Origin: Orbicella franksi
Taxonomy: Eukaryota
Length of the DNA: 64,000 nucleotides
Direction: 5' to 3'
NCBI GenBank assembly: GCA_964199315.1
Contig: OZ116711.1
Span: 3,596,001-3,660,000, forward strand
Part shown: positions 5,697 through 33,603 of the stretch, piece after piece
Layout: the number at the start of each line of letters is the position of its first letter
Numbering within the stretch: the first letter of the stretch is position 1
The notes under the pieces: model-generated
The model's database searches: none
The model's input: only the letters and a program-made list of their open reading frames with translations
Told to the model about the DNA's origin: nothing
Translations under genes and position numbers: made by a program

Positions 5697-6278
5697 TCAT
5701 GAAACCGTTGACTCTAGTGAACAAAGACTGTCAACACTGCCACTAACGCTTGGGATCTTTGAGTATGTGGCTCGTCTATTCCAATAATTCAGTTCTCTGA
5801 AGGACAATACCAATGCTAGCATGGTCAAAATCGCTGTAGCTGCGAAAAGTCCCCCCAATATGACCAGATAACCGTTACGCTGGAAAATCCTCCGACTCGT
5901 GACTAGAGTGGCATGATTACATTCCTTTCCACTACACTCTTGTACGCAGCGTTTGGCGTTACACGTGAACGAGCATGCTCCAGATAGACAGTGCTGTCCA
6001 CAATAACCGACGTCACTTGTACATTCCATATGGCAGTTATGACATCTTTGGTAACAAGTCCCGGATGTGCACGTCATTTTCTTACATTTGAAGCCATCGC
6101 AGGCCTGGTTACAGGTAGCGTATTGTGAGTCTCCGTACGTAACGCCACACTTGCATGACACGTCACTGCACTGCTGAAAGCAAGTGTTTGATACTGTGAC
6201 GTTGCAGTTTTCTGTTGATGACGCGTCAACGACGGCAGCCAGAAGAAATTCCGTGATAATCACAATGAAGCAAAGCAT
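5697..6278 (-). CDS. Cys-rich (CxQxC 4-Cys repeat) type I membrane protein, paralog 1, 193 aa
   Basis: Signal peptide MLCFIVIITEFLLAAVVDA, 20 regularly spaced Cys, TM YLVILGGLFAATAILTMLALVLSF, 34-aa tail. Intact ORF conserved in three paralogs. Splice acceptor tcttcacag 8 nt upstream of the ATG. Confidence 0.88.
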   Translation of the reverse strand: MLCFIVIITEFLLAAVVDASSTENCNVTVSNTCFQQCSDVSCKCGVTYGDSQYATCNQACDGFKCKKMTCTSGTCYQRCHNCHMECTSDVGYCGQHCLSGACSFTCNAKRCVQECSGKECNHATLVTSRRIFQRNGYLVILGGLFAATAILTMLALVLSFRELNYWNRRATYSKIPSVSGSVDSLCSLESTVS

Positions 6279-6419
6279 CTTAATATCTGTGAAGAGATGC
6301 AGAATGATAATAGGAGGTTATAGCTTTTTCTTGTCAAACTTACGTTAAAGAATGATTGACATATAATTCATGTATATGCAAGATCCGTGTCAATAATGGC
6401 CTTGATCACCATGAATCTT

Positions 6420-6550
6420 TCTGTGGCTCAGTGGATACTCGAGTAGAGCGCCCCCGCCAGGTCTTCGGGAGGTCATTGGCCCTGAATCCTGTTGAGGACT
6501 CAGAATTTTTTTCCTTTGTCACACGCTGTTGACATGTAACGATTACATCT
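6420..6550 (+). mobile_element. Degenerate tRNA-derived SINE (paralogous copy 15041-15175)
   Basis: A-box-like tggctcagtgg, eroded B box (ctgaatcc), then ggactcagaattttttcctttgtc...gacatg...attacatct. Confidence 0.7.
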
Positions 6551-6689
6551 AGTTTTTCCTTACAGTCTTAATAGATTTTCAAACAGACAGGTAAGGAGAA
6601 TAAACACAATCATCAGCTAGGAGATGTTGCCTTGATGTAGCACTACATGAGCACTGGCACCATGATAACATAGTCAGTAACGAGAATTA

Positions 6690-8150
6690 ATTTTGAGCTT
6701 CACTGGTTCGGTGTGAATTGACTGGCGAGTGTGTGCTGAGATTTACAGGTGAAACCCGTCGGAATTCCGATGCAGTGTCCCCATCTTCTGTCTTCTCCAT
6801 GTCAACATATCCCGATTTAAGTGAATGTTTCGAATCAATCAAAATCTGCATGACCAAACATGTTCGGCCAGTGTGAAAGAGAAAGATCACTCATTAGATT
6901 AACGGGTGACTTAAATTGATTTTTACCATACTTTCGAGAATTTTAAAACGTATCAAGCACGAAGTTCTCACACTTTCCAGGGAGAAACAGCGAAAAACAC
7001 CATTATCGAGTTGAGATACAGTCTTAGGACAGAGAAGAGAAACTATATTGTCCAGGTTTTTCACACATTTGTCATATAGGAATTCCCTTCTGTATAGCTC
7101 GTTATTTGGGTAGATATTTCTTGTACTACTATAAATCGACTGGAGTAAATATTTGGTCGCTTGAATTCGAGATTGAAATACTGATCGTGAATCGAACAAA
7201 CCTTAGATTGATCCTCAATGCAATGAGAATTGAACTGAGGCGTACTGTGACATGCTGTTTCGAACAGAGATGACTTACTATGAGCGGTCTATATAGTCAT
7301 CGGTTTTTCTAATTAGATAAATTACGCTTTGTGGAAGGTAGATTGTATGCCAGTGCTTGCAACAGTGTGACTGCTCCGTGATCAGGTAAAATAAATCAGT
7401 TTACTTTTGGCATTAAATTGACATGTTTGCATTTTGTAAGCGCTAAAGGTGTTTTAGACTCGAAGATAATGGCAAAAGTTGAAATGCTAACCATTTCTTT
7501 ATATTTAGTATATTTGCTTTGGCTTGTTTTAGTTCTATATCAAAAACGATGTTTTCATTGCGCTAGACTGAAAGAGCTGCCCCCTTCTTCCCCGTCTGGC
7601 GGAGGACAGATTTAGTTGTAAAGATCTTCCAAGGGACTCAAACCTACACACGTAACCTTTACGGCTATGGCCAATTAAATTAATAAAAAAAGCCTATCAA
7701 AGAAAACTGTAAGCATACCAACCTTCAAAAGATTGCTGTTAGTCTCGCTAAACGGAGCTTAAACCGACTGTTTTTTTGAGGTATCTGTCTGTATGTGACT
7801 TGTGAAAATGCCGTATAAGCAATATTCATCAGACGCTAATGGACTGAATGTGATTAATAAGCGCTATTTATAAGGGAAAACCCCCCCAGTGACGGCACTG
7901 ACGTCAGCATTCCATTGTCTGATAAGAGTCAGGCGGAAAAAGAAAGCAAATAACGGTTTCTTAGAAAGTAAGGAACTTTAAAAACGCGCTGTATTGAGAT
8001 GAGGTATGTTAATTTACATCACGTACACTGGAAGAGGTTAAGATATGCTTTTTTCAGACAAGCCACATTCAATTTTCGTTCTATCACTTTCTGTTTACCC
8101 TACTCGTGATCACAGAACGCTGTCGGATAAGACGGTCAGGTCAAAAGGAT
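6690..8150 (-). pseudogene. Decayed LRR gene remnant upstream of paralog 1
   Basis: Fragments LQLNLSS (~7610), SSLKHL*RLQNAN (~7430-7475), LPDHGAVTLLQALAYNL (~7340-7390), TVSQLDNGVFRCFSLESV and KINLSH (ORF 6894-7199). Multiple stops. Confidence 0.45.
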
Positions 8151-8854
8151 CAAATAATTTTCCTTTCTGTTTCTGTTGGTTTTTCCATTAAAACAATACA
8201 ACAATAGAAACATAAAGATTAGACAGCTATCAATAATTTGAACTAGACCTTTCTTAGCAAACAAAAGCTGAAATTGGGTTGACTAAATATCTTCTAATCA
8301 GTGGCAGAAAATTTGATTTTACCCTCGGGTGTGTACTTGCCTTCACTCATGTTTGAATCGACTCAGTTTCTCTCCGTCTAAGAGTCTGGTTAAATAACTA
8401 ATTATCCATGCTCATGGAAAAGAAGCGCCATATTGTTTGGGCTGCTTGAGTATCATTCCTGTAATAACAAATCTTTGTTTTGTTTTGTTTTTTTTCCTTT
8501 TTTGTCAAATAATGATGAAAAAAGGAATCTCATTGCTGTGTGGGGGTGATCAAAGACGTAAAATGAAAAAGAAACAGTTTTTAAAACGTAAAACTAAAAC
8601 TCCATTTCCTGTTGTAAAGTACTTCTCGGAAGTTGGGTAATAATTCTATACCTTTACGTGTTTCACTCAATCGTTTAAACTTTACGCACGAAAGCGAAGG
8701 TCTGGATCTTTCTTTGTCGGGAGATGCACGTGCTACGACTCACTCGAAGTGTAAACAGACAATTTGAAATGCAAAGCTTGTACAACAAAATGGACTTGGG
8801 CAAATTTAATTACATTCAGTCACTGGAATGATGAGTGCGAAAATGTAAAAAGAA

Positions 8855-9040
8855 CAGAGCGTTTTCTGTCACGTGGCCAGCAGCCATGCAAGTCTTATTG
8901 GAACGAAAGAAAGTGTTTACATATGAAAAGAGTTCAACTCTCACAATCACAGGAATGGTTTGGGGCATCAACATGGCCGCCGTTTCATTGTCTTAGGACG
9001 CCAATATGGCTGCTGTGAGGTCATGTGAAAACACTCTATA
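8855..9040. mobile_element. ~185-bp MITE, copy in duplication 2
   Basis: Paralog of 371-555 with ends agagcgttttc ... gaaaacactctata. Confidence 0.7.
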
Positions 9041-10299
9041 CCAATAACTCTCTTTGAAAGACTTGTGCTAGTCTTTTACAAACCAAAGATACAAAGAACT
9101 GCACAAAAATATCCAATATCAGACAAAATAGTCAAAATAAATACTTTGGTTTTGCATTACCTATAACAGTGGACTAAATGCAAGAGATATTGAGATTTCT
9201 AAACCACCCCCCACCCCCTTCCCCGCCATCACTCCGGGTTCTTTTGTACAAGAAGTCAAAAGCTATGAAATTTAAATTCCTTTGAGTTTGAAACGAGCCT
9301 TCGTCTTCTAAACTGCAGTGAAGACTATTTATTTTGAATTGTCCTTTTCAAGGTTAACTTTTCTCATTTGCATAACAATTTAATCCAACGTGGCCGGATG
9401 CGAGGCAATCTCGGGTAGAGACTCCAATTCCTTATATGGGCAATTCTTACTGTTTGCCAAACAGGTTTGATACCGTTTGACCACTCTGTACAACATCAAC
9501 ATGTCTGGCCATCAAACAATGTTTGATCATGTTTGATCGCCAAACATTTTCTGTTTGGACAGGGCTTTAGATTATATCATAATACACATGAGAAAAGTTG
9601 ACCGAGAAAAAAGTTGTTGTCGGCCTTCGGGCAATGTTTGAATTGGACAGTTTGTCATTTACATCTGTTATTTCAATGCGTTAAACTGTTCGAATCACGC
9701 CTTTAGACGTTTTAGAACATACTGTAAAACAAAATATTTGCAATACACTTGTTGCAGCAAGTTTCTTGCGTTATTTCGGAAACTGAGAGATTGTCTGTTT
9801 GTCTAAATTCAGGTCCGTTTTGGACCACTTTGATCCTTGCGGTCTTCGACAGTCATGAATTCCTGTTGACTCAATTAGTAATGGGTCCTGGTATTTTACC
9901 GAGTCTTTTCACTTCTCGTCACCGTATCTGTCCTCTGATCGGTCTTGATATCAAGATTTCCAGAAACTAACCTGATTTCAGCGAAATTCTGAGCGGCAGT
10001 GCAAACGAATTAATCCAAGCTGAAAAGAATTGCGCGCTGAATCCCTCCAGACTTGCAATTGCGCGGAGACAGCGCCCCCAAATAAAACGTGCGTTTTCTA
10101 ACGAACTGTCAAGTATAGTCACAACGGGGAACCTTAGTGATTCTCATCTTCAAGAGTCTTTTGTCGTGACAGTTGACTTCCTGCTTACCAGCAGATGTTT
10201 TCTTAACTAAATACACAACAGGAAATCAATAAAAAAACAACGGTTGGAACGATATGCACACATCTCGTGCAGTTTAGCACAATTCCTGTACAAATTTAT

Positions 10300-13150
10300 A
10301 ACTTTCAGGTTGTTTAAATACATTGAATTTTTTTCGAGGTTTATTTTAAAATTGTCACGTAACAATCGTTGGTAGCTCAGTCAATTTCGTTATACATGAA
10401 CGTTACAAAATAGCCAGGAAAATTGACAAGATATAGGAAAGCTCCACTATGTGAATTCTGAGCCATTCAGGTCTTGGATGACTAATGCGAAGTTGATTTA
10501 TCAGCAGGAACGAATTTATAATTTTATGTATACACTTGCTCGAACAGGCGTCACCGGAAACAGTAAAAAAATATCCTGGCTACCTCAGGTCACATCTTTA
10601 GGCGTTTAATGTTCAATAACACGTCTAGAGACCAACTGAAGCGCATGCAACGCAGATTATCTGTTGTCTATACATTGCTTAATCCTTTTATTACCCAACT
10701 CTGAAGAACTGTTGTAAGAAATGTTGCCTTTGAAATTTTGTATAAACCTTCCTTACTTCCTTGAGCTGAATTTCAACTGTGTCTGAACATAACTGAGCAG
10801 TGAGTCCACGAAGTGAAAGCGTACAAATATATTTTTTTGAAGTCGTAAAGCTGGTTTAACTGGTTAGAGACTCCTGTTTGAAAAAATCTTCTTAGCACCA
10901 TGGGGTGAAATACATTTTTTGTTTGGATATTACTTGGATTCTAAGTCAGAGAATTTGCACCGAATAGAAAGAAGGACCTCTTCGACTGAGAACTTCAACA
11001 GCTGCAGTGTGTTCGGTCACATGTGCATAGGCGTTGTATCTTAGTTCAATTCTTAGCGAAATTTCGCAGTTTCCGTTTGGACGGGAATGTTACGACCTGA
11101 CCCTTAAATCAATACCCTGTCTCCGACCGGCCTTATAAAGCCATTGTTAAGGGCTTTTGCTAATGGTCTTATCGATAATGATGAAAGAGTAGCTTCTGAA
11201 AAAAAAACATACCAAATTCAAGACTAGAGTGCAAAAGCTATACCCTATTTGAGACCATAATGGTCAACATCGATACATGTACCCTATTTCTGACCAAAAC
11301 GGCTAAAAAAACCATTCCCTTCGAGTTCGGGGCACGCTCATACTTATATTTCCCATTCAAGGGAGAAACCCTTAACCAAGGAAATATAGGAAATGTCTGT
11401 AGGCGTGCCGTGGGATGTGTCTGAAAAGGTCAGAGTTGTCAACAGAAACCTAAACTAACTGTAGCGTTCTACTCAGATCAATTTACTATCAAATGTTATC
11501 CCCGGGTATATTTTCAAGGTAATATAAGAAAGTGTCTGTGGGCGTGTAGTGGGATGTGTCTGAATATATCAAAGTTGTGAACAGAGGCTTAAGCTGTAGT
11601 GTGCTACTGAGATCAACTCAGTATCGTATTTTATCCTGTAAACATTCTATTCCATGTATGAATCCAGGCTCGCGGTTACTATCAAGTAAAAGTCAAGCAT
11701 TCAATAGTTTTTAATGCGTATAGATCAAAAAACTTAAAACAATGTTTGTCGCTCTCGCGTGATCAAACGAGTTAGAGGACTACGGAAAACTAGTTAAACC
11801 GGTCTTGCAGAGCACAAACAACGTTAGGTCGCTTCGTTATTTGTACGGGTTTAGCGAGTTATCTGTTGTCTACGGCATGGATAGGAATCATATTGTATTA
11901 AAATCGGGATATTCTATTGCATCGTGTCAGAAGACGTAAGAAATCTTCGGAAAATTCGTAACTGTGCACAAACTTCAAATACCCGAGGTCTAACGGCTTG
12001 TATTATCCCTCGTGTTTGTGAAATATTTGACAGTGTTGCATAGCAAACCGTAAAATAACCAGTAAATATGTATAACTGAGATAAGAGACAATCACGACGT
12101 GTCTTCTGAATAAGTTCGTTGTTTTGTTCTCCAGAAACCTTTACTGTTTTGCAGCACACAATGATTCCTTGGCGAAACTAAAACACGTACGGACAGATAG
12201 CGATGATAACAAAGAGAGTCTGGATCCGGGGGTACTCTACAACGTTTCGCACGGGGAGGCCTCGCTCTTAGGTCCAATCCAATTACCTTCTTGTTTACCA
12301 CTTTGACAGAAAAGGTGCCACTTTCGGGCGTAGCCTCCCCCTATAGGTTGTTATAGGGAGTACCCCCGGGATCTGGATGACCCCGCGATATTGTCGATTT
12401 ATTTTACCACAGACAGAACAAACTAAAATTACATATAGAAGGTTCCCGGTAACTAGAATTCAAGTGGGATTCGTTTAGAAGCAAACATGTCCGTAATGGC
12501 CAGTGTACATTCACTTACCATAAATATTTTGCTGAAGCTGGGATAAAATCCGAGTCGGAAAATATCTGCACAAAGGCTCCAGTTCGAGCGAGATGAGTTC
12601 ATATATTCACCTAGTGCGAAAAATGAACGGATGTCGATGTGACCAAGAAAAAAATCTCAGTTTCCACGTGAAGATCTGGATGGCTGCGTCGTTTATACAA
12701 ATAGCACTGGACTAAACTATTAAATCACGCTGCGAAGAGTGAGCAGTACGTGATGTTATGATAAAATATCATTTACATGCGTTGCCAAGTCAAGTTGAGA
12801 GTAAATCTTCGGCAGCTGGGAAGGATATTTCTTTGTTCCGTCTGGTTTGGCTTTATAACTCGTGTAAACAAACAAACGCTGTTTTAGCACTACATGAATG
12901 TGCAAGTGTTAGATAGCATGATGTGATGAAATTATAATTTCTATGTTACTATATTGTTCTTTAGCCTGTTCAGTCTTTTTCCATGTACTTGCGCTACCCT
13001 TATATGGATACTTAACCTTCTGATTCTCAACAGTGATAAGCCGCTACAGGCAATGTGGGAGTCTGGGCCTTTCAGTCCCTTATATGGAATTAATACTAAG
13101 TTCGGCTGTGAATCTATTAAAACAATTCCCTTTTCTTTTTCTTTGGTTAT
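10300..13150 (-). pseudogene. Decayed LRR gene, paralog of 1750-4500
   Basis: Duplicate of the copy-1 remnant. ORF 11914-12159 contains IQAVRPRVFEVCAQLRIF, and LDVLLNIKRLK lies near 10600. Same two MITE insertions. Confidence 0.5.
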
Positions 13151-14319
13151 TTTAAGCAGGTCAAGAAGTTAACGAGCTGATTGTTTCTGAAAGCTTGATT
13201 TATTGACTTCAAACCATGAATTCCAAGACGAATTATGGTATAATAAAAACAAATTAAAATAAGTTTCATGTTGATCTTCGCCTCAAGTGCAATGAGAGGT
13301 TAAGCACGTCCACATTTTTTTTCTTTTCGCCAGTCTAAGACTATTTCAGTTGTTCAAGTGGAGATTTTTTCATATATATGATCGGAAATCCAAACTTAAA
13401 TTACTAGTGACTGACGAAACTAATATCACAATAAATTTGTGATAAGACTGAAAAACCTCGAAAGAAGACGTGGAAAGATGAAGATGGGAAATGTCGAGAA
13501 TGCATATCCAGCTGTTTTTATTCATTTAATCAATATGGTTTGAAATCAGTAACTTCCTTTGTACTTAAGTCTGATCTCAAATTCTTGGCTCGGGCTCTAA
13601 CGCACCCACCTGAACAAAGGAAGGCGAGATTAGAATGCGAAGCTCGTAAGCAACACAGGAACACAAGATGGGTTACGAGGAGTTATCAACACGTATTTCT
13701 CCATACTCTGTTAGTTCATTGTACACTAAACAGGTGATGAGAATGCAAAAATCATCAACCAAGGAATGTTATTTCGATATTAGCGCTGATTTTATTTTTC
13801 TTGCTTTTTAACATTTCCAAAACCCAGTGATATATATTATTGCCGTTCTTGTCTCAGAAGTTCTTGCCATTCTTGTCATTCATTATCTCAAAAGTACAGA
13901 AGCAATAATTGTGTATTGCCTTTTCAGGCACTGTCTACTTTCTTGTATTCAGTCGTCTTTGAAAAACATCAAGAAATCGTTGATATGCGACATTTTAACT
14001 GCAAGGAATCTCTCTAACACAGAAACGTCACGTCTCTAACTACCTTGTGGTAATGCTAAGCAGTTCTTTCTCACTAACACTTTGACTGTCATGGTACTAC
14101 ATCTACCAAAACTTTCGACAGTCACCTCGAAACGGTTGACTGTTGACTGTCACGGAGCTGTTGATTGACAGGTAAATGTTGAGTATCACCAAGCTCATGA
14201 TTAGCTGTCACGGAACAGTACGAAGTTGTTGACTGTCACGTTCAAGAGAGTAGTAATGAATTTCCGTGGACTATAACCTAGAGGATTTTGAAAGCAGTCA
14301 CGAAATTCTTTGCCTCCTG

Positions 14320-14901
14320 TCATGAAACTGCCGACTCTAGTGAACAAAGACTGTCAACACTGCCACTAACGCTTGGGATCTTTGAGTATGTGGCTCGTCT
14401 ATTCCAATAATTCAGTTCTCTGAAGGACAATACCAATGCTAGCATGGTCAAAATCGCTGTAGCTGCGAAAAGTCCCACCAATATGACCAGATAACCGTTA
14501 CGCTGGAAAATGCTCCGACACGTGACTGGAGTCGCTTGGTTGCATTCCTTTCCGTTACACTCTTTCACACAGCGTTTGGCGTTACACGTGAACGAGCATG
14601 CTCCAGAAAGACACTGCTGCCTACAATAACCGACGTCGCTAGTACACTCCATGTGGCAGTTATGACATCTTTGGTAACAAGTCCCGGATGTGCACGTCAT
14701 TTTCTTACATTTTGAGCCATCGCAGGCCTGGTTACAGGTAGCGTATTGTGAGTCTCCGTACGTAACGCCACACTTGCATGACACGTCACTGCACTGCTGA
14801 AAACAAGTGTTTGATACTGTGACGTTGCAGTTTTCTGTTGATGACGCGTCAACTACAGCAGCCAGAAGAAATTCTGTGATAATCACAATGAAGCAAAGCA
14901 T
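14320..14901 (-). CDS. Cys-rich type I membrane protein, paralog 2, 193 aa
   Basis: 11 aa differences from paralog 1 and all 20 repeat Cys retained. Acceptor ctctttacag lies 8 nt before ATG 14901, so the ORF-track extension MYLFTDTK is largely intronic. Confidence 0.88.
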   Translation of the reverse strand: MLCFIVIITEFLLAAVVDASSTENCNVTVSNTCFQQCSDVSCKCGVTYGDSQYATCNQACDGSKCKKMTCTSGTCYQRCHNCHMECTSDVGYCRQQCLSGACSFTCNAKRCVKECNGKECNQATPVTCRSIFQRNGYLVILVGLFAATAILTMLALVLSFRELNYWNRRATYSKIPSVSGSVDSLCSLESAVS

Positions 14902-15239
14902 CTTAGTGTCTGTAAAGAGATACAAAATGATAATGGGAGGTTATAGCTTTTTCTTGTCAAACTAAAGTTAAAGAATGATTGACACGTAATTCATGTATGC
15001 AGGATCCGTGTCAATAATGGCCTTGATCACCATGAATCTTTCTGTGGCTCAGTGGATACTCGAGTAGAGCGCCCCCGCCAGGCCTTCGGGAGATCTTTGG
15101 CGCTGAATCCCGTTGGGGACTCAGAATTTTTTTCCTTTGTCACACGCTGTTGACATGATGAACATTACATCTAGTTTCTCCTTACTGTCCTAATAGATTT
15201 TCAAGCAGAAAATAAACAGAATAAAGAAAACCATCAACT

Positions 15240-17100
15240 AAGAGATACTGCCTTGATATAGCACTACATGAGCACTAGCACTGTGATAACATAGTAGCGA
15301 GAATTTATTTTGAGTTTCACTGGTTCGGTGTGAATTGACTGGCGAGTGTGTGCTGAGATCTACAGCTAAAACCCGTCGGAATTCCGATGTGGTGTCCCCA
15401 CCTTCTGTCTTCGGCTCCATCTCAAAATATCCAAATTTATTTAAAATTGAGGGAATGTTTCGTGTACAACAGAAACCTCGCGTTGCTTAGATTTAAGTCC
15501 TAAGGCCGTACGAGGTTCTTCCAAGCTCAGTATTGTGTTAGCCGATTTCTGTCAAACATCCCTTCACTTTTCCGATTGCGATCTGATAGTGACGGAATCA
15601 ACTGTCATATAGGGCAACGTTTAAAAATTCTTCGACGACGGTTACAATTCAATTTATCCAGGCTCTTAGCTCTTCGCAAACCTCTTATACACACTGAACT
15701 GAAGAAAGATTGCATGTTGAAGCAGAGTCTACCAGCTCGCTATTGAGTTACAATAAGCCATTAGATTTAAACAACGTACTTTGCTTTCTGTGCTTCTATC
15801 AGCTTTCGACAATCTTAGATCAACTTATTTCAAGATTCAATTCGAATTAACTCAATTATCTTTGCGACGGTGGCAGCCAAGAACTTAGACACATCGAAAC
15901 ACAATGTTCCTGAACTACTTATTTTATAACTACTTACCTCAGATTGTTTTATCGTAAAGTTCAGAAGATGTCTCCAGCTAAGTGTATTGCACGGAGAATT
16001 CAAGATAATTACAATCGCTGAATTTACAAGTTTAAACTTGTTTTACCAAATGGGCGTTGTAACACGCTTCCGACAAACAGATTGGTGAAACTTGAGTAAA
16101 TTCTGAAAATAGGCATGGATGTCACCACCGTTATTTGTTTCAAGACGACCTCATGCAGACAATTTTCGAAAAGAAAATAACGCTCTTAATTAAGGAGAGA
16201 TTATTTTTGGTATGGGACTTTAAACAAAGCGATATTTTATTCGTATTTTCTTTTTGCCAAATATTTAGCCTCCCACTCGCTATTATCAACATATTTACAA
16301 CCACAGAATTTCTCCTCCTTTGTAGGACAATGGAAACTAGATATCATTCTAACAAGTCTTGTGACTGAAAAAAATAACTTTTGAACTTGCACAATTAAAA
16401 CCGGAAAGGAAGTAAAACTGACCTTTTGTCTTTCCAAAATTAAGCCTAAGACTTGTCCAAAGCGAAAATGCTTTCGACCACATAGTTCCAAGACCCTTAA
16501 AGTATCAAGGATAAAAGAGAAATCAGGAGAGAAATGTATCTCTTGGAGCTGAAATATTCGTGACATGAAACATGCATGCTAAGCAAAGTTAATTTTGGTT
16601 TTCAACCACGTGGGCGACACTAAAAACCTCAACTTGAAGAGGTGCAAAACCGATTTCCTGATTTCGTTTTCGTATCATTGGAACACAAGTTCAAGAGCTT
16701 CTCTACGCCCACATACTTTCGACTAGAGTGAACCACATAGTAGGAGAGCATTCCCAGAAGAAACTTATGCTTTTGGTCTTCCAGATATAAGTAAAATACT
16801 TTCCTCTTGTTAGATTCCTGTTATATGACGCTTGGGTAACGAGCTGTCAGAGCTCATATCCTGAACAAACCCATATATCGTGTTTGAGACATGCTATATA
16901 CTATTTCAAGACAGAAAACCCTGAAAACAATACCTTATCGACTGACACGTGCGCCAACGAAAAAGACAAACAGGAGAGTGGCTAGTTCCCCCTCTGGACT
17001 GTTAAAGCAGTACAGTCATCCGCGATCGATATGTGCCCAAATAACAAGTAAACAGGAAATTGTTTCTTCATTGAAAAGCAGCTTTAACTTTATCACAACT
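15240..17100 (-). pseudogene. Decayed LRR gene remnant upstream of paralog 2
   Basis: Fragments VEKLLNLCSN (~16700), FKGL...AFSLWTSLRLN (~16440-16500), LK*VDLR...KVRCLNL (~15760-15835), DLNLSN (~15480-15500). The 3' end is shared with the 6690-8150 remnant. Confidence 0.4.
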
Positions 17101-17612
17101 GATAAAAGGATTTACTTAAATAGACTTTGATAATCACAGAGATTATTCAGAGAGCATTTCAAAGGAGCCCGAGCCAATTTAAAAAAGACAACACTCACAT
17201 TTTCAAGTGTTGTGCCCAGGACCATGATTTGTCGGTCATACTCGCTTCCTATTTCCTCTTTTTCTGAGTCATGCTAACACAACCGTCCGTGAAAAGATTA
17301 CACGTATGTTGAGTCTCATCTTTAACCTGTGCGTTTAAACAGTTCCTTAAACTCTACGCAACATCACGTTGCGTTTAATTGATTACAAATGTGTTTTTTT
17401 CCTTTGAATTGCCGGCTGATTTCACGTCACCAGACGATTGCTATCAACTGCTCAAAACCCGGTGACCGACCTTCAGTATGAGGATTAATATCAATAAATA
17501 TGGAATGTGCCAATAATACTTCCTTCTTAGACTTTAGACCTGAGGCAAGATAAGATCAGTTTCTCTAACAACGCGTCATGATAAAAATCTGGGGGCGTGT
17601 CATATCACCAAG

Positions 17613-17745
17613 TAGCCTGTTCCAGGCTCTCGGTAGTTGGGGACGAGGAAAAAAAAGGGCGAGCGAGGGAAAAAATGAGGGAGGACGTTTTTTTCTCTCG
17701 CTCGTTTTCGCTCGTCCCCAGCTACCGAGAGCCTGGAACAGGCTA
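17613..17745. mobile_element. 133-bp MITE, TAG...CTA ends, 35-bp TIR, perfect 9-bp TSD
   Basis: TIR tagcctgttccaggctctcggtag(t/c)tggggacgag with 1 mismatch. TSD atcaccaag at 17604-17612 and 17746-17754. Confidence 0.93.
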
Positions 17746-18153
17746 ATCACCAAGTGTCTAGGTCACTCCATTAGACCAAGTAAGAGGACCTTGGGAACGA
17801 GGTTGGTTGATACGTACAAAATGTTCAACAAATAAAACCTTTTAAAAAATATTGTTTCAAGGATCGACAATTAAACTTGGAGCGCCGGGCGAGTTTAAAG
17901 CAAAGGTATGGCAGTGCTCAAAACTTTTGGGTCAATTTTTATGCTGCGAAATTCTCTTTATGTTTGATATAGCTAAGATTTTATAATTGCTTAGTTCGGG
18001 GACTACAATTCGAGTTGTAATTCGTTGGCACACTTGAGCGACATATTGAGTTAATGTTAGCTTTAGCCGTCATGTATACCTCGTGTCCATTCGATCGTTA
18101 TATATTGCGGCGGTATTTCTCGTCGCGCGAGCAACCAACGATTAATGGCACTT

Positions 18154-19109: not shown

Positions 19110-19142
<33 letters not shown>

Positions 19143-19290
19143 GTATCACAAAATCAAGAACCCATTCGGAGCGAAAATTTGTATGAATATTAGTTTTCAG
19201 CTGCTCTTATACATCGTTTAAGTAAAATCTCAGGAAGATCAATAGTTTTGTTGTTTGAATTTTAGTGACGTCATGTGAAAACCAGCTATA
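18721..19290. mobile_element. ~570-bp MITE, second copy at 55561-56137
   Basis: Ends gctggttttca... / ...tgaaaaccagctat. Colinear with 55561-56137, each copy carrying a different internal deletion. Confidence 0.85.
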
Positions 19291-19336
19291 CATAAATTTT
19301 GCAGATCTCGGATCTCAGCTATCCGGCAGAGTTATA

Positions 19337-19637
19337 GGAGCGGTGGCCTCATGGTTAGTGGGCTCGATTTCGGAGCGAGTGGTCCGGGTTCGAGCCCTGG
19401 CCAGGGACACTGTGTTGTGTTCTTGGGCAAGACACTTTACTCTCACAGTGCCTCTCTCCACCCAGGTGTATAAATGGGTACCGGCGAATTTAATACTGGG
19501 GGTAACCGTACAATGGACTAGCATCCCATCCAGGGGGGAGTAGAAATAATCTTAGTCGCTTCATGCTGCAGAAACCGGGATAAGCTCCGGCCTGATGCAC
19601 CACTTGGCTGGTATGCAGACTTACTTTACCTTTTTTT
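19337..19637 (+). mobile_element. Full-length tRNA-derived SINE with CORE(MIR)-like central domain
   Basis: A box tggcctcatgg and B box ggttcgagccc. Segment tgtgttgtgttcttgggcaagacactttactctcacagtgcctc...tataaatggg resembles the MIR CORE. Tail ttactttaccttttttt. Confidence 0.85.
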
Positions 19638-19644
19638 ACAAATA

Positions 19645-24109: not shown

Positions 24110-24380
24110 CATATGGAACCGTCTGCACCAAAAAATTCCATCGGGACTCCCAGGAGTTCCTCTGCTGGGTCCCCGAGGAGCCTTTCCCCCTATTCCCTCA
24201 ACACATTCTCAAGTTTAGAACCGTCTTTTTCGTTTCTCGATGTCAAGGGACAATCCTTTGTCGGGCTCGACCACAGGGAGCCGTCTGCACCCAAAAAATT
24301 CCATCGGGACTCCCAGGGGTTCCTCTCCTGGCCCTCGAGGAGCCTTTCCCCCATTCCCTGAACACACTCTCAAGTTTGCG
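24110..24380. repeat. Direct repeat, two ~105-bp copies ~160 bp apart
   Basis: ccgtctgcac(c)aaaaaattccatcgggactcccagg...gaggagcctttcccc...aacac(a)tctcaagttt occurs twice. Confidence 0.9.
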
Positions 24381-24956: not shown

Positions 24957-25133
24957 CTTTGTTCCCTCCACGGGGAACTACACAAGAGTCTTGTGTGAGT
25001 AGGCTGTGTTCCCTCTCGTACTACACTATTGAATACCCTGTGTTCCCTCTTGTACTACTCTAATGGATGCCCTGCGTTCCCTTTTGTACTGCACTATTGG
25101 GTTCCCTGTGCTCCCGCATGTTCTACACAATTG
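24957..25133. repeat. 34-bp tandem repeat (4 units from 25004) plus left arm of an inverted repeat pairing with 25927-25991
   Basis: Units start ctgtgttccc-like at 25004, 25038, 25072 and 25106. The reverse complement of 24957-25021 matches 25927-25991. Confidence 0.85.
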
Positions 25134-25704
25134 TTGACTTCGTCAGAAAAATTCTGACACTGCCGCCAAGATTACGAGTTACAAGGGGAGCAGGTCTTCG
25201 TCTTCTTCTTCTGAATCCCATCTGACTACAAGACAAAGCCAGAGCTAGACAAGTCAAAACGGTAGTGGCTGCGAACAATCCCGCTAAAATAACCAAGTAG
25301 AGGCGCGGTATAAAAGGTTCCTTGTGGTCTGAGGGCAAGTGTTTACACGTCTTCCCATCACACTCTTGTACACATCGTTTGGCGCTGCACTTAAACGAGC
25401 ATGCTCCGGACAAACACTGCTGATTGCAATAATCGACGTCACTGGTGCATTCCATCTGGCAGTCATGACACTTTTGATGACAAGTCCCGGATGAGCACGT
25501 GATCTCCTTGCACTTGTTACGTTCGCAAGTTTGGCTACATTCAGTGTAAACATAATCTCTGTCACTTGATGAACATTTACATGAAGTGCTGTTACACTGT
25601 TGAAAGCACGTGTTTGATAATATCGAGTTGCATTTTTCGGTCGGCGATGACTGGACGGTCAAGGCGAGTTGGAAAACAGCTGAAACCAAGATGATCCTTA
25701 GCAT
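25123..25704 (-). CDS. Cys-rich type I membrane protein, paralog 3, 193 aa
   Basis: Signal peptide, the same 20-Cys scaffold, TM LYLVILAGLFAATTVLTCLALALSC and juxtamembrane RRRRRR. Acceptor tttctccag 8 nt before the ATG. Confidence 0.88.
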   Translation of the reverse strand: MLRIILVSAVFQLALTVQSSPTEKCNSILSNTCFQQCNSTSCKCSSSDRDYVYTECSQTCERNKCKEITCSSGTCHQKCHDCQMECTSDVDYCNQQCLSGACSFKCSAKRCVQECDGKTCKHLPSDHKEPFIPRLYLVILAGLFAATTVLTCLALALSCSQMGFRRRRRRPAPLVTRNLGGSVRIFLTKSTIV

Positions 25705-25926
25705 TTTATCGTCTGGAGAAAGGAAAAAAACACAATTAACATGAATGCTGTCAAGCCCTCGACCTCGTTCTCAGGGTCGCTGGGTACGTCAAGACGAGAG
25801 GCGCTGGGAACTAGGTTGTCTGGACTATGCTCCCCAAGTCCCACCCATGACTATGAGTCTCCACTCACGGGAGGGGTCCGTTGGCGGTGATTCAACTGTG
25901 TAAAGACTACGCGAAAACACCGAGGA

Positions 25927-25991
25927 GTTCAGAGCGAACACAGGGTACTAACACAAGACTCTTGTGCAGTTTCCTGTGGAGGGAGCAGAAG
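25927..25991. repeat. Right arm of inverted repeat pairing with 24957-25021
   Basis: agagcgaacacagggtactaacacaagactcttgtgcagtttcctgtggagggagca versus the reverse complement of the left arm, agagggaacacagcctactcacacaagactcttgtgtagttccccgtggagggaaca. Confidence 0.85.
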
Positions 25992-27339: not shown

Positions 27340-29700
27340 TTTAAATATCATTGTTGATAGTGACAATGCAATGCGGTGTGAGGCACGGCATTCTTTTCGC
27401 GCTCAATCTTCTCTCTCGGGTAATACCGTCTTTGCAGAGTTTGTATCGACTGTAGTTGAACTCGAGATTGACAAAGACATGCACGCAGACTTCCGTGACT
27501 GAGAATGGTGCAAAGTTTAACCTCGTCACGGGGAAACTACCTGATCGCACGCTGGCGTAAAACATGTTTAGGAAATGCTCACATTACCCCATTGAGTAAA
27601 ACACAAGTCGCGAACTCTTATCATTCTCTTGAAACCTAACACGCAAAGACGAACATGTAAAAGACACCTCATAACTGTTGTTCTTATAGGGAAAACACAC
27701 CATTTTTTTCGAGTAATTCGAAGCACACAATTTCGTCGCTCGTGCACCTTGATGCTAAAGGTAACAGCATCGAAACAGCACCTTCCGATTTGAATTTTGA
27801 GAGCCTGTGAAATCTCACTGTAGCTATCAGACCTTTGACTATTGTTCGTAATTGTTCGGTTTTCATTTTTTAGAGACAATGCGTCTTTTGTTGGGAGCCA
27901 TATTGGAAATATTACGTGTTTAAAGTTAGGAGCGATTAAACATACTTGCTGGGCCATCCCAAAACTGGATAAATCGACAAACAGAACATTTACCTTGATT
28001 TGAATAAATTCCTCCGGCTCTAACGGTCTATTGAGTCAAGTTCAGGCTGACATATGTACACTTGTTTGTACAAAAGAGCTGTGAACAATGGCCTTTGTGA
28101 GGATTAATAAGCCGGCCGGGGGCTTGGCATCTGTCTGTCATATGTCTCTTCCAAACAAACCGCATACAACGTTCATTGTCTTTGTCAAAAATCGATGGAA
28201 AGTTCGAAAAAGGTTGTTTTGAAGTGAGAGAAATTCCACATCTACGATTTTTCCATCGAGTTGGTGTACTTTTCTTGAGATGGGCAGTTCGCCAGAATTT
28301 TCGTGGCCAGCTCCTTTGATACCGGGTCACGGCTTCTAGTTACCATGGTTTTAACGTAATTTCAAAAACATGCACGGTTTGGGGGTCCAAAGATCAAAAA
28401 AAAAAAAAGAAAGAAAGAAAGAAAGAAAGAAACTTTGACCGAAAGCTCTAACCGAACCAGAAAGGGTCTATTTCTCGATAAAGTACGCCAATTCTGGAAT
28501 AACGAATAAAACATATTGTCATCGATGACTTTAAAAATAAAGTACAAAAAACAAAGGGAAGTTTCAGTTTCAATGGGCATTCCAGAATTTTTGGAATTTT
28601 TTTCGCACATTCATAAAGGCAGAACAAATATCATACTGCTTGTTAGTCTACAACAGATGAAAGGATTACTTTTTTAAACCAGAAAAGAAAGGGGTTTTAA
28701 AGTTTTAAAATCCTCAGTGGCATCCACAAATTATATTAAAACATGATTGTTCCCGGCTGCTGAAGGATACCGGTGACCTTTAATTTCCTTCCTTTGCTCG
28801 GACATTTCCTCGAATATTAACGACTCTGTTCTCTGATTAATTCTAAACACTTTCCCCACGCACGTTTATAAAGTATTGTCGTTGGCATCGTCGTTGAGGA
28901 AGAGAAATTCACGTGATAAAGGATTTCTTGCAGACACTGTCTTGACTTCAACGAGCCCCAATAAATTTGAGAATTTACAAAATACATTCCCGAATTATTG
29001 AAATTTTTCGCAAAATCGTCTAAAAGCAAACAGCACCGCATAAAAATCTTGATCAATGGCAACTGTTTGAAAGATCAAACTTCAAGATGCATAAAACCAC
29101 CGCATCAACCCGGTGTTTCTCTGAAAATAAAGAGTTCCGTTTGCATTGCGTTTTGCATTACCTTCAAACCGAGAGAAACCCGCACAATCACGGTCGTTTA
29201 CTTCAGTATGAAGAAACAAACAGAAGATTAGGGAAGATACCTGAAAATTTTTGGCAAATATTTTAATCTTTTGGGGGGCGTTGTAACGTCTGGACCGTGA
29301 AAACTCTTCAACCGGAAATAACCTCATCAGAAACCGTACATCGTTCAAACAAAACCAGAATCTTTTAAGATGTTCTTTCTGTATTGAAATTGCACGTGAT
29401 TACACACTTGGTTCTAGCATAGCAAAATTGCCAAGACTTACCGATGGGTGCAACGCACAGCTCCAGATAGATCAAGTGATTTTCACCTGAACTTGATCAC
29501 GAAGGCTAAGATCTGTTGTTTCTTCCAAGTGCTTGTAAGATTGAACTCCTTTACCTTGGTGAAGAAGTATGTCGGTGGAGATGCCAGTTAAGATATCTCT
29601 TTGATGGTTTCCAGAAAGGTTTTTGACGGACTGCCAGAAGGTCCAGAAGCGTCAAATGATCATACAATTGTCAAAGCACGTACAAACAAAGTTCGCTGAC
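27340..29700 (-). pseudogene. Decayed LRR gene remnant upstream of paralog 3
   Basis: Fragments VKNLSGNH (~29610), KSLDLSG (~29470), RLKYLPKIFRYLP (~29230-29270), LKFDLSN (~29070), RVVNIRGN (~28810), VEFLSLQNNLFRT (~28200-28240), and LRRCT-like WKRHMTDRCQAPGRL (ORF 28028-28330). Confidence 0.42.
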
Positions 29701-30499
29701 CCGTTTCGTGAAAGAGGTCAGACTGTGCTGTTTACAGTACGTGAAAATTCTATCGGTTTTTTCTCTCTGTCGAAAGCTCAGTTAATTCAGTTTACCAACT
29801 TTAGATACGACCGAGAAATACCCAGACGTTTTTTAAATAAACCTTCCTTCAAGACGTTGTACTCAACAAATCAAAGAAGAATGGCATCAAACTGTTGACA
29901 GATTCGAGAAGAAAAGAAAGATAAGCTTTTCAGTCACGTGAATTTGAAATTTCCTCGTGATCTGCAAATGTTCTCTCAAAAAATGGCGGGACAAGTCACG
30001 CGTGACGGAAACTAACCAATCAGAACTAATCACGTTCAGAGTCGTACCCAGTCTTCGTTTTTCAACGGAGAGGGCGGCGGTGAAGTAGACTTCTCAGCCG
30101 AAATCAAAAACGAATATATTGTTAGACATTTTGTTATTGTTGCATATTTTCACGAGTAGCCCAACTGACGGGCAGAAAGAAACACCGACCAATAGAGATT
30201 CGACGGTTTCTTTTCCAATATCCAGTCTTTAAAGCTTTTTGGCACTTTTGTATCAAGCCGTTTTCTCAGAGTACAAATATCGTGAGACATTTGCAGCTAT
30301 CTGTACTCGCTTCACACGTTACCTGCGGATTTTGTCTTATGCTGAACCAAGAAAGGATGATCATCTTCAGCTGAGCATACTAACACGGTCAACAATTTTC
30401 TTGTACTCGAAGTATTTTCGAAAAGGCTTTACTATTTAAGGGGCCCGCTGAACTCTTCCGCGCAAGTGTGGCGAGTTGAATATTAGACCGTCGTTCCAA

Positions 30500-30587
30500 T
30501 AGCCTGCAGAACAGGCGGATTAGCGTGTGTCGCGTTTCGCTCTAGCGTTTCGCTATCTGCCCCGCTAATCCGCCTGTTCTGCAGACT
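30500..30587. mobile_element. 88-bp MITE, TAG...CTA ends, 26-bp TIR, perfect 9-bp TSD
   Basis: TIR tag(c/t)ctgcagaacaggcggattagcg. TSD tcgttccaa at 30491-30499 and 30588-30596. Confidence 0.92.
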
Positions 30588-32113
30588 ATCGTTCCAATTT
30601 CCAAAGTTGGGCTCGGTGACGGAGGATAATCCTTCTCCCACCGAGATCAATCTTGTGGGACCTGCCGTGAAAGTTATCGTAACTATATTCTAGAGGATAT
30701 TTGTCATTTGTGGAGTGTTTTCACAGCATTGTTTTTTTGTGAGTGTCGTAGAGAAATCTGACGTTCCGGCGGGAAGTGTACAAAGCGGCTTGTTCCACAC
30801 GAAGGGTCGAATGCGGGAAGAAAGTTGCAAATTATCTCGGACAGCCATGGTAAGGGGTCATTCGTGAGCTTCCAGTGTCAATAAAATGCGCAATATATAT
30901 CAGCTTATATCGTGACACAAACCTCCTTATGGCAAGTCACGTACTCCTCCCCAGGGACCGCTAATCGCGACACAGGGAAAATATTTTACGTAAGCATAGT
31001 TCGGCTTTAGGGAGACGAAAAGGGCCTATTTCATCGGATCTTGTTGAATTCAAAACCGAAGTAAACTTACCCGACGAAGCAACTAATTTGATAATTTTAT
31101 TTTTTTAAACCTTTAACACCACTCTCTCGACTTTTCTGCGTCCAAAAGTTATAGCTTCTGTTTCTTTGGACTGGGTCAGAAGTCCTGAGTATTAACCATT
31201 TGGTAATTCTCCCCATTTTCATATCAGCAGGTCGAGGTTGCATTGTCATTTTATTTTTTCTCAGATTTATATCTCAAATTACTTTTCTAATTTTATCATT
31301 TTAATACTTTATTTACAAAATCTCCCATGTTGTTAGATTCTAGCTAATTTTTCAGATACAAAAGGGATGAAATCTTTGAAGGTTTAATATTGAAATCCTT
31401 GGCCTTATGTTTTCTCTTAAACTAATTGGCTAATATGAGTTGTTAGTATGGTTGTACCAAATAATATAGTCTATATAAACTTTAATATGATAGATCACAA
31501 ATTAATTTTCTTCTAATAAGTCTTAAACTGAACCATGCAGCGTAGCCTTAAAGGAGCTCAGGCACAGCATTCTGAGTTATTTTAGCCGCGTACAAAATTA
31601 CCTTTAAATCGAAGGACACCTGAAAATAGTAGTTTACTAAGAATGAAAAGCACTAAAAAAATATTAATAAAACATAAAGGAACAATTATAGCTACGGTTG
31701 GAGAAGATTAACGCGGATTACAAGCGACGAACTTGAAAAAATTAGGCTGAACTTTTCAAGAAGTGCAAACCGTGACGTAACACCTCTATAACTACCAGCA
31801 TTACACTCACCCTTTTATGCCTCAAGCTATGACGCTAAAATCTTAGGAATTTTATCGCCATATTCTTAATATTGGGGTAGTGTAATATTTTCTTATATTT
31901 ATTTGAGTTGTATATCTACTATTCTCTACTTGGTTTTTTCCCAGCGTTTGTGGGTGAAGCATTTATGTATTTTTACTGATATTTATATTTAAATATTTTT
32001 AACATATTTTATTTTTAATTGATATTTACTTACATTAGTTCTTTTCAATGTTTCGTTATTTTACTCTACTTATTGTCAAGCGTTTTATACATCAGCTTCA
32101 CACGAGCCTCCAG

Positions 32114-32201
32114 CAACCTTGATCCCAGTTTCTCTCTCCTTTGCGTCCCTTGTCGAAATCAGGCAAAGGAGAGAGAAACAGAGAGTCTGGGATCAAGGTT
32201 G
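32114..32201. mobile_element. 88-bp MITE, CAACC...GGTTG ends, eroded 9-bp TSD
   Basis: 15-bp TIR caaccttgatcccag. Flanks agcctccag / agcctctgg (7/9). Confidence 0.8.
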
Positions 32202-32314
32202 AGCCTCTGGCTCGGATCTGGAGGGCAACCTCAGCCCACGTTTTGACACTAATAGATTGATGATTTATTGATTGATTGATTGTCTCTTTGATCTTTATCA
32301 CTACATCATGTTCT

Positions 32315-33603
32315 CTATGAGCTTAAGAGCCTTACACAAGCGATCAGAACAGCTAACGTCTCACTTTGCAGAACTGATGCTTTACTCTGTGAACGCCCGA
32401 TGTAATTACATCTTCCTTTGAAACATTGTCTTTTACAATGCTTTGCTTGACACTTCATCTCACATCTACCCCCAAGACACATCTGATCGCACCTCTCCAC
32501 TCCACTGGTACACTCCATAGTACAGTTTGCGCAGACCTGGTGACAAATAGCCGATGAGCACGTGATCTGAACACATTTGGCTCTCCATACACATGACTGT
32601 GAGCAGAACTGACTAGACGAACATTCCATGTTACAGTGACCGAAAAAGCACTTCTGCGAACAACCATGTCTCCCTAACGAAACAGAAGAAATACATGTTA
32701 GTTATGGCAAAGGGTTCGCCTCAAGGACTAGCAGGTGGATCAAGTGATTCTGCCATTTCCCATCAACCCCTTTTCGCTGAAAAATAACTGGAAAAGTCAA
32801 GAGAGCCCAAAATTCCGTTAAAATATGGACCAAAAACTGCTCCACCTTTACCCAATTATACCTTTCCCGAACAAGAAAGGTCCTTCTTCACTTCTCAACC
32901 CTCTTCCCCCCGCCCCCTACCCCCTCTTAAGATTCGCCACGCAATACACTGATTTACTTTAGACCTCTGGAATCTAGCCTCGGGATTTCTTATATGCAAG
33001 AGAGGTGGGGGAGGGGAGGGTAAGCTTTCCCATCTGAAACGCTATTAGGTAGCATCCAGTGAACAGGGTCTGAATACCAGTAGCACCTTGGGGAAGGGTG
33101 CTCGTACGCGAATTAGATCTTGAGCTCGAATTACTAAATACTGAGGGTATCCCTCTTTACATAGAAAAATACTTTTACTGCTGGCAGCCGGTTTTTTCTC
33201 TAAAGGTCATTTAGACGAGTGTTTAGCCATCGCGAACGCAAAAAGGCGGTGTGGCCGTGGCCAATTAGGGATCAGAAGGCGAGAAAAGCGCGGTACGGCA
33301 GAGGAGGGAAGAAGACTAGACAAGGATGGTAAAGCCTCATAACCCCTGCTGAATTTCGAGAGGGACTGTCAACAGTCTAAAAACATCCGGCTTACCAGAA
33401 CAAATCATTTTAGGACAAGAAGAGAAGAAATGGCACTTTTGTGCGCAGCTGGTGAAGGGGGAAATATCAGTCATATCACACGAGCAACTGGTCAAGTTAC
33501 ATGTCTTTTGACAGAGATGTTGATTGATGTTTCCTCCTTTGCATTTTTCATCCGCTTGTGATACTGTCATAAACAGAGCCACTCCTATCACCACTGCTAT
33601 CAT
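32315..33603 (-). CDS. Cys-rich surface protein, paralog 4: join(33603..33396,32673..32315), 188 aa, 28 Cys, GPI-like C-terminus
   Basis: Donor TCT G|GTAAGC at 33396/33395 and acceptor ttcgttag|GG AGA CAT at 32674/32673. The phase-1 join keeps the Cys repeat in register (…MICSGRHGCSQKC…). AATAAA on the minus strand at 32264-32269. Confidence 0.78.

Follow-up and report, generated by a model that had tools for sequence, protein, structure and literature searches.

Disulfide-stapled solenoids, the fold predicted here for a coral surface domain, are to our knowledge found mainly in insect antifreeze proteins. The beetle proteins TmAFP/DcAFP (PF02420) are, like the coral domain as we predict it, small beta-solenoids in which a ladder of disulfides crosses the core, one or two per coil, and both have short, regular Cys spacing and small residues. 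TmAFP, however, is a secreted and soluble right-handed beta-helix whose coils span 12 residues and carry an ice-binding TCT ladder, whereas the coral domain is membrane-anchored, lacks a Thr ladder, and is predicted to form two-strand coils of 18-19 residues with a conserved Gln on the A strand. Neither PF02420, the TmAFP repeat (E ≤ 10), nor any solved TmAFP chain matches the coral proteins.

The best structural match to the coral model is the RTX beta-roll (PF00353) of the Bordetella CyaA blocks and of serralysin and lipase C-terminal domains (rmsd 2.6-3.7 Å over 91-96 residues). The two share an 18-residue coil and a flattened two-sheet shape, but RTX coils belong to bacterial secreted proteins and hold Ca2+ at GGxGxD turns, whereas the coral turns are flanked by Cys. 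PF00353 is unmatched in Pfam searches and the GGxGxDxUx nonapeptide motif is absent from the sequences; the resemblance is convergent in shape and not homologous. Similarly, the curli subunit CsgA shares strand-arc-strand repeats with the coral model (~19-23 residues long, each holding a conserved Gln), but it forms a bacterial amyloid fiber, contains no Cys, superposes on the coral model with an rmsd of 8.7 Å, and has no sequence relationship to it. Mammalian keratin-associated proteins are also Cys-rich, with short Cys repeats and predicted models that superpose loosely on the coral model, yet they are cytoplasmic hair-matrix proteins without signal peptide or anchor, both of which the coral proteins have. 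Fungal Ecm33/Sps2 and receptor L-domain proteins, the next-nearest language-model neighbors of glycosylphosphatidylinositol (GPI)-type coral relatives (0.65-0.68, below the lead threshold), are surface-tethered, GPI-anchored beta-helical modules, as those relatives appear to be. L domains, in contrast, form bigger three-sided helices that are rich in leucine and have no Cys ladder, and Pfam finds none in the coral proteins.

The 64-kb stretch of reef coral DNA analyzed here (the window) contains four genes that form a tandem cluster encoding small membrane-tethered cell-surface proteins of one unnamed domain family (Table 1). An earlier note on this DNA had described four intact minus-strand genes with signal peptides. 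Their positions, strand, and signal peptides were confirmed, and P1, P2, and P3 are indeed single open reading frames (ORFs), the three longest in the window; the fourth copy, however, is not one ORF but two exons. For P2, we take the ATG at 14901 as the start, the mechanical ORF beginning further upstream, at a TTG. Spliced P4 encodes 188 amino acids with 28 ectodomain Cys, and its intron position is kept in orthologues. A polyA-RNA contig contains the spliced form, ruling out two pseudogene fragments. The contig also rules out a third exon after a GTAAGG near the 3′ end, since it follows the genomic sequence without a break past the stop codon. P4 ends in a short hydrophobic tail and has neither the transmembrane (TM) helix nor the cytoplasmic tail of P1 to P3. 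Rfam identified no RNA family in the window.

Table 1. Positions of the genes, protein regions, and duplicated blocks in the window
Feature	Positions	Strand	Description
P1	5697..6278	-	Intronless CDS, 193 aa
P2	14320..14901	-	Intronless CDS, 193 aa
P3	25123..25704	-	Intronless CDS, 193 aa
P4 exon 1	33395..33603	-	Signal peptide and coils 1-2; ends ...TGT TCT G, then GTAAG
P4 intron	32673..33394	-	722 nt, GT..AG; RNA contig joint 32672->33395
P4 exon 2	32315..32672	-	Five further coils, small-residue stretch, C-terminal hydrophobic tail, stop codon
P3 ectodomain	25330..25644	-	aa 21-125; predicted disulfide-stapled beta-solenoid, N-glycosylation sequon N38
P3 transmembrane core	25231..25299	-	aa 136-158, conserved motif L-A-G-L-F-A-A; AF2 helix 134-166
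Segmental duplication block A	120..6819	.	Self-blastn, pairs with 8604-15439
Segmental duplication block B	8604..15439	.	Self-blastn, partner of 120-6819

P1 and P2 arose from the segmental duplication that produced blocks A and B, which are 86-88% identical at the nucleotide level by self-blastn. P2 is a recent tandem duplicate of P1 (94% amino acid identity, dS 0.16, dN/dS 0.16), and P3 is ~52% identical to either.

In all four proteins, the ectodomain is built from the unit CxQxC-x(2-4)-C-x(3-4)-C, and the Cys pattern repeats every 16-20 residues. As the earlier note had read from the sequence, P1 carries five cores (CFQQC, CNQAC, CYQRC, CGQHC, and CVQEC) and 20 scaffold Cys. These Cys lie between residues 25 and 120 (96 residues) and are retained at the same 20 positions in P2 and P3. 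The strict CxQxC core that the note described holds for P1; the fifth core of P2 is CVKEC, leaving it with only four. Strands follow the patterns C-x-Q-x-C and C-x-[MF]-x-C, with strict i, i+2, i+4 spacing. Across 50 sequences, the invariant or near-invariant non-Cys ectodomain residues are Q58, Q77, H80, M84, E85, T87, D89, V90, Q95, L98, S99, G100, F104, and A108. Cys 1 and 2 are lost together in 15 sequences and Cys 19 and 20 in 5, a pattern that fits disulfides between adjacent Cys; joint losses of Cys 5 and 9 and of Cys 12 and 13 in distant members are at odds with such pairing but may be alignment errors. From co-loss and parity, we infer an adjacent-pair connectivity.

Profile searches agree with the earlier statement that the domain belongs to no named family. 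Pfam hmmscan found no named domain in the four window proteins at E ≤ 10 and no real domain in 112 family representatives (E ≤ 0.01) or 10 long relatives; the sole matches, to SNAP, FSIP2, and New_glue, were all below their cut-offs. The TNFR, EGF, laminin-EGF, and furin-like profiles were unmatched (E ≤ 10 for the window proteins, E ≤ 0.01 for the 112 relatives), as were Keratin_B2 and Keratin_B2_2 (PF01500, PF13885) in both sets, and a sequence-profile search of all PDB sequences returned just one unrelated chain (E 8.9). RefSeq names coral relatives "keratin-associated protein 9-1-like"; this "keratin-associated protein-like" label is a misnomer, a compositional artefact.

Close homologues fall in 60 clusters, P0147 is an orthologue of P4, and the family occurs in hexacorallian cnidarians (stony corals and sea anemones). 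The product of Nematostella LOC116618230 has the same architecture, with a YQRL motif. Longer relatives contain up to ~10 matched stretches of the domain. GPCR-named entries in the P0134 cluster look like a fused gene model rather than a real domain combination. A search for literature on the family, including by LOC and XP accessions, found none.

Copies of the family are expressed: P1 and P3 sequence is found in many polyA RNA-seq runs, and spliced P4 is in the RNA contig mentioned above. No P4 reads were found in the ~12% read of each of the raw runs X23 and X24, an uninformative negative, X23 having no reads on the whole stretch. The contig index has no entry for the exact P1 protein. Presence in polyA RNA-seq, the 60 clusters of close homologues, and dN/dS ratios of 0.11-0.30 in all pairwise comparisons of paralogues and orthologues together indicate that the genes are real, and they are under purifying selection. 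The gene order P4->P3->P1 recurs with its ~8-kb spacing at two loci of other coral assemblies (L005 and L008), and the order P3->P1 recurs at L007. In the tree, P1 and P3 form separate clades, each supported at 99/99, with the Nematostella group outside both.

The description of these products as cell-surface proteins is borne out by their topology, which combines a signal peptide with a TM or GPI-like anchor. P1 to P3 have a TM helix, conserved and with a small-xxx-small motif, and a cytoplasmic tail. P1 and P2 conform to a type I single-pass layout, with signal peptide, one TM helix (AF2), and a cytosolic YxxPhi. In the P1 tail the motif is YSKI, accompanied by a Ser/acidic cluster, and in P1-type and anemone homologues alike YxxPhi lies ~13 residues past the membrane together with such a cluster. 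Among 72 TM members, half (36), Nematostella included, keep YxxPhi as Y-x-[KR]-[LIM], and 26 end in [ST]-x-[VIL]; a C-terminal hydrophobic-Val is present in many members. The P3 tail lacks YxxPhi and is poly-Arg, ending in ...KSTIV. A strict class I PDZ ligand was rejected for the P3-type C terminus, in which position -2 is not a conserved Ser/Thr and only K-S-x-Phi-V is kept. Receptors that are sorted or endocytosed typically carry YxxPhi and C-terminal hydrophobic-Val motifs. We infer a function for these tail motifs from sequence; they are short and could occur fortuitously. By inspection, the C terminus of P4 consists of a small-residue (omega) region, a short spacer, and a terminal hydrophobic tail, an arrangement conserved in three orthologues, and GPI-like C termini are found in 59 family representatives. 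P4 and many of the longer relatives appear to be GPI-anchored.

The ectodomain is predicted with fair confidence to be a two-sheet beta-solenoid with Cys at every arc. The AF2 full-length model shows alternating short strands in the ectodomain (pLDDT ~88-92) and a TM helix at 134-166, and the ectodomain-only model has a pTM of 0.73; the five AF2 models differ, with mean ectodomain pLDDT of 54-79. When clusters of this family that have ESM Atlas models are compared with the AF2 model, the TM scores are 0.89 (rmsd 1.9 Å over 106 residues) and 0.76. The best solved structural matches are all beta-solenoids: RTX beta-rolls (Z 10.0, 8.7, and 7.9), CsgA (9.1), the CAP C-terminal domain (7.3), MpAFP (6.6), Rhagium AFP (6.5), and Lolium IBP (6.3), where a Z of 7-10 only slightly exceeds the typical best Z of unmatched models. 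Foldseek found no significant match in the PDB, AFDB clusters, or Swiss-Prot, with lists dominated by beta-helices; the top AFDB cluster match was a 481-amino-acid "keratin-associated protein 10-5-like" protein (E 7e-3, TM 0.29). Predicted models of mammalian keratin-associated proteins superpose on the ectodomain model with a TM of 0.71, suggesting that predictors may give Cys-rich repeats this shape by default. The repetitive solenoid guessed at in the earlier note is thus upheld as a prediction by AF2, ESM Atlas, and the structural matches; its comparison with insect antifreeze proteins stands for the fold class, with no homology found.

In a rival architecture, the ectodomain would be an extended rod of small disulfide-knotted modules of the TNFR, laminin-EGF, or furin-repeat type and the solenoid an artefact of predicting a Cys-rich repeat. 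The varying quality of the AF2 models, the look-alike keratin-associated protein models, the lack of a significant Foldseek match in the PDB, and the presence of small single-pass receptors such as TNFRSF12A among weak language-model neighbors (score 0.67) would all be consistent with such a rod. However, TNFR, EGF, and furin-like Pfam profiles find nothing even at E ≤ 10, two predictors converge on the same shape, and the i, i+2, i+4 Cys pattern with its ~18-residue period fits stacked two-strand coils, making the rod unlikely in our judgment.

Two rival roles can be weighed against the same data. The earlier note had called the family diversifying, and a family engaged in allorecognition or in symbiont or microbe discrimination, with its Cys scaffold kept and its surface residues evolving fast, would suit the surface topology, the tandem cluster with its recent lineage-specific P1/P2 duplicate, and the considerable differences between subfamilies at non-Cys positions (~52% identity). 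Yet no comparison, not even that of the young P1/P2 pair, gives an ectodomain dN/dS outside 0.11-0.28, the 50 sequences vary little or not at all at many non-Cys ectodomain residues, the locus has just four copies, and the subfamilies show 1:1 synteny between assemblies. The subfamilies are old and conservatively evolving, and the data do not support a recognition locus that diversifies rapidly, a reading we judge improbable. Even less probable is that the proteins bind crystals or mineral in the calcifying epithelium, a flat solenoid face docking on aragonite. The host is a reef coral and the predicted fold class is that of ice-binding beta-helices, MpAFP among them, but Nematostella, which has no skeleton, carries a homologue of the same architecture, which speaks against mineral binding as the core role of the family. 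Moreover, neither Thr nor acidic residues form a regular ladder on the strands, the proteins have membrane anchors and sorting motifs and are not secreted into a matrix, and no link to a skeletal proteome was found in the literature.

Our preferred reading, which we consider reasonably probable, is that the locus is a conserved tandem cluster of membrane-tethered glycoproteins with a predicted solenoid, serving as a hexacorallian receptor or adhesion module. The ~100-residue ectodomain would form a flattened beta-solenoid with two sheets and ~18-19 residues to the coil; P1 to P3 would have five coils and P4 seven. In each coil, the A strand would read C-x-Q-x-C and the B strand C-x(3-4)-C, with Cys and Gln side chains probably pointing into the solenoid core. 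A disulfide between sequence-adjacent Cys would close every arc, giving ten consecutive pairs, and these disulfides would take the stapling role played by Ca2+ in RTX beta-rolls. The ectodomain may offer a rigid surface for binding or adhesion to an extracellular partner that is itself conserved and probably repetitive, for example a glycan or a matrix polymer, and the TM forms (P1 to P3) would act as trafficked receptors. A bolder proposal, which we advance tentatively and regard as possible but doubtful, is that the domain founds a fold family new to eukaryotes, a "cystine beta-roll," with an internal Gln ladder and two disulfides in every 18-residue coil replacing the RTX Ca2+. It would be used in Hexacorallia by TM- and GPI-anchored endocytic or adhesive receptors for a repetitive ligand, such as cell-wall glycan of microbes or symbionts or matrix made by the animal itself.

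Lineage-restricted surface proteins that lack an assigned role are numerous in corals and anemones. Here, a compact family of this kind is conserved from coral to Nematostella, is transcribed, and is not in Pfam. The misleading "keratin-associated protein-like" database label is corrected, and the locus no longer counts among the candidate hypervariable recognition systems. Should the fold prove correct, it would contribute a new domain family and a miniature scaffold of great stability. The function of the family can be tested by knock-down of the Nematostella homologue.

The minus strand between 5697 and 33603 carries four related genes, P1 to P4, predicted to encode cysteine-rich surface proteins. 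The ORFs of P1, P2, and P3 are the three longest in the 64-kb window, and a tblastn search of the window with their products finds only one more copy, P4. P1 and P2 are 94% identical and lie within a tandem segmental duplication (86 to 88% nucleotide identity); P3 is ~52% identical to either. A 34-nt tandem repeat begins just downstream of P3, overlaps its last codons and stop, and presumably sits in the 3' UTR. Two short ORFs located among the paralogues appear to be interspersed-repeat fragments, not genes.

Features of the window, in window coordinates
Feature	Position	Strand	Description
P1	5697-6278	-	single ORF, 193 aa
P2	14320-14901	-	single ORF, 193 aa
P3	25123-25704	-	single ORF, 193 aa
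P4	32.3-33.6 kb	-	two ORF pieces
Segmental duplication	120-6819 and 8604-15439		contains P1 and P2
34-nt tandem repeat	25004-25133		3.8 copies, 79% matches
Short ORF	17578-17835	+	no Pfam match
Short ORF	19265-19543	+	no Pfam match
RNA pile-up	31600-31790		stacked short contigs
Smaller 43-nt repeat array	56438-56574
43-nt tandem repeat arrays	57644-58491		7-8 copies each, 72-79% matches
PAQR-type gene	60764-62141	-	two ORF pieces, 152 and 181 aa
(TGAC)n microsatellite	61327-61575		in intron of PAQR-type gene

For P4, sequence reading places a splice donor (...TCT G/GTAAG) at 33395/33394 and a pyrimidine-rich acceptor (...TCGTTAG/GG) at 32673/32672. In a polyA RNA-seq run, a 465-nt contig connects 33395 straight to 32672, leaving out a 722-nt minus-strand segment that has GT..AG ends, and continues past the stop codon, still colinear with the genome, to 32298. 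Because this contig joins the two exons, P4 is an intact, spliced, and transcribed two-exon gene of 188 aa. P4-like genes in two other assemblies share its intron position and type of C terminus. Among named proteins, those nearest to P4 are 193-aa Montipora entries, whose ORF is uninterrupted in ~1.1-kb contigs.

P1 to P3 have a hydrophobic N terminus, 20 cysteines at identical positions between residues 25 and 120, a transmembrane (TM) segment, and a tail of ~35 residues. Their repeat reads C-x-Q-x-C, 2 to 4 residues, C-x(1-4)-C, and 4 to 11 residues, giving a cysteine period of 16 to 20 residues. The P4 ectodomain has 28 cysteines in ~7 units, and the protein closes with a run of small residues and then, at the very C terminus, ~13 hydrophobic ones, a candidate GPI attachment signal judging by its usual form. 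The ORFs, the P4 splice contig, and the 20 shared positions bear out the four-gene cysteine-scaffold family described in the earlier note. Of the 20 scaffold cysteines, 16 are invariant among 50 homologues and 2 others are retained in at least 90% of the sequences, with the first pair variable. Little or no variation occurs at Q58, Q77, Q95, M84, F104, H80, E85, T87, D89, V90, L98-S99-G100, and A108, and much of the TM helix is conserved as well (R134, Y136, L137, L140, A141, L143, F144, and A145). Conserved strand residues (C/Q/C and C/[MF]/C) fall at i, i+2, and i+4, the spacing expected of beta-strands with one buried face.

Cysteine losses were counted in 109 near-full-length domain matches. 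C1 and C2 are jointly absent in 15, and neither is lost singly in close homologues; C19 and C20 are jointly absent in 5, and C19 alone in 3. Pairing of sequence neighbors would take up all 20 cysteines and close every arc. A nested scheme with two disulfides per hairpin would leave cysteines unpaired at either end. In a small number of distant members the patterns fit neither scheme and may be misalignments.

Pfam searches of the window proteins (E ≤ 10) gave no match except a sub-threshold SNAP, and no domain was found in ten long relatives or 112 family representatives. A profile search against all PDB sequences was also negative. These searches confirm the earlier view that no named domain is present. 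In the full-length AF2 model, residues 30 to 110 have a pLDDT of ~88 to 92, the A and B segments coincide with pairs of short strands, and residues 134 to 166 form a TM helix; the ectodomain-only model has a pTM of 0.73, and the five AF2 models differ among themselves. ESM Atlas models of two family clusters match the AF2 model with TM scores of 0.89 (rmsd 1.9 Å, 106 residues) and 0.76; models of keratin-associated proteins superpose on it too, loosely. In a Foldseek-independent structural scan of 48,161 PDB chains, where Z scores of 7 to 8 are common for unmatched models, beta-solenoids occur throughout the top of the list: RTX beta-rolls (Z 10.0, 8.7, 7.9, and 7.5), CsgA (9.1), the CAP C-terminal beta-helix (7.3), the Ca2+-dependent MpAFP (6.6), and the Rhagium (6.5) and Lolium (6.3) ice-binding proteins. 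Foldseek itself returned no significant match, its lists consisting of beta-helices. These predictions lend support to the disulfide-laddered beta-solenoid proposed earlier, and we regard a beta-solenoid as the probable ectodomain fold.

Pairwise Nei-Gojobori dN/dS values (whole gene/ectodomain) are 0.16/0.12 for P1 versus P2 and, against orthologues at loci in other coral assemblies, 0.18/0.11 (P3, L007), 0.26/0.25 (P3, L008), 0.29/0.28 (P1, L008), and 0.16/0.13 (P3, L005). L005 and L008 repeat the order P4, P3, P1-type at intervals of ~8 kb, and L007 repeats P3, P1. A maximum-likelihood tree, midpoint rooted for drawing only, separates P3-type and P1-type clades (99/99 each), each spanning several assemblies, with the P1/P2 pair window specific (100/99) and a Nematostella group outside the coral clades. 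With dN/dS low in every comparison (0.11 to 0.29) and gene order syntenic, the earlier description of the family as diversifying is unsupported; pairwise dN/dS, synteny, and tree indicate a conserved paralogue set that is not fast-diversifying. The mineral-binding idea is also unsupported.

A word-indexed search returned 60 clusters of ~190-aa proteins, none with a Pfam domain, and an exhaustive profile search returned 114 representatives (E ≤ 1e-3), including proteins of 300 to 731 aa with 5 to 10 matched stretches. A simple hydropathy criterion assigns 72 members a TM segment and tail, 59 a hydrophobic C terminus, and 41 neither; the last may be fragments. Most matches have no taxon attached; among the few Atlas cluster members with a record, Cnidaria is the commonest phylum. 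Named members include Acropora millepora LOC114970600 and Nematostella vectensis LOC116618230, the latter laid out like P1 to P3 (signal peptide, 20-Cys domain, TM helix, and tail). Montipora RefSeq orthologues of P4 (e.g., XP_068676091.1) are auto-named "keratin-associated protein 9-1-like" or "4-3-like," likely a misnomer, since they lack a Keratin_B2 Pfam match and carry a signal peptide and GPI-like tail. A 488-aa secreted Acropora protein (P0134/P0243) contains several copies of the cysteine domain. Its 90% cluster also holds GPCR entries ("beta-2 adrenergic receptor-like" and "histamine H2 receptor-like"), apparently linked through one 865-aa fused model, KAK2568576.1, probably an annotation fusion of neighboring genes.

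Many polyA and metatranscriptomic coral RNA runs contain 0.55 to 0.88 of the sampled words of P3 and P1, and one run with P3/P1 sequence is a single-cell library; P4 was found in 1 of 4 runs compared, at low depth. At 31600-31790, short RNA contigs, many with loose ends, stack to a summed depth of ~3,500 to 4,000, versus <20 on P4, the pattern that an abundant transcribed repeat common to other loci would give. Elsewhere in the window are arrays of a 43-nt repeat and a gene of the progestin/adipoQ-receptor type. An intron interrupts this gene, and its two ORF pieces match Pfam HlyIII/PAQR (E values of 2e-18 and 8e-19; profile positions 55 to 146 and 1 to 78).

P1-type tails follow the pattern ...Y-x-[KR]-[LIM]-x-S-x-S-S-S-[VL]-[DE]-S-L..., and Nematostella-group tails keep Y-Q-R-L; YxxPhi is the canonical AP-complex sorting signal. 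P3-type tails are poly-Arg and terminate in K-S-x-Phi-V; in several further clades the terminus is [ST]-F-V. A hydrophobic residue plus Val at the C terminus has two known roles, as a PDZ ligand and as an ER export signal. The TM helix is unusually conserved at L-A-G-L-F-A-A, a small-xxx-small motif. Together, the tail motifs and conserved helix point to a trafficked receptor or co-receptor rather than a passive anchor. P1 to P4 most likely belong to a conserved family of hexacorallian receptors or adhesion modules, tethered to the membrane and built on a predicted Cys-stapled beta-solenoid, with a putative ligand.
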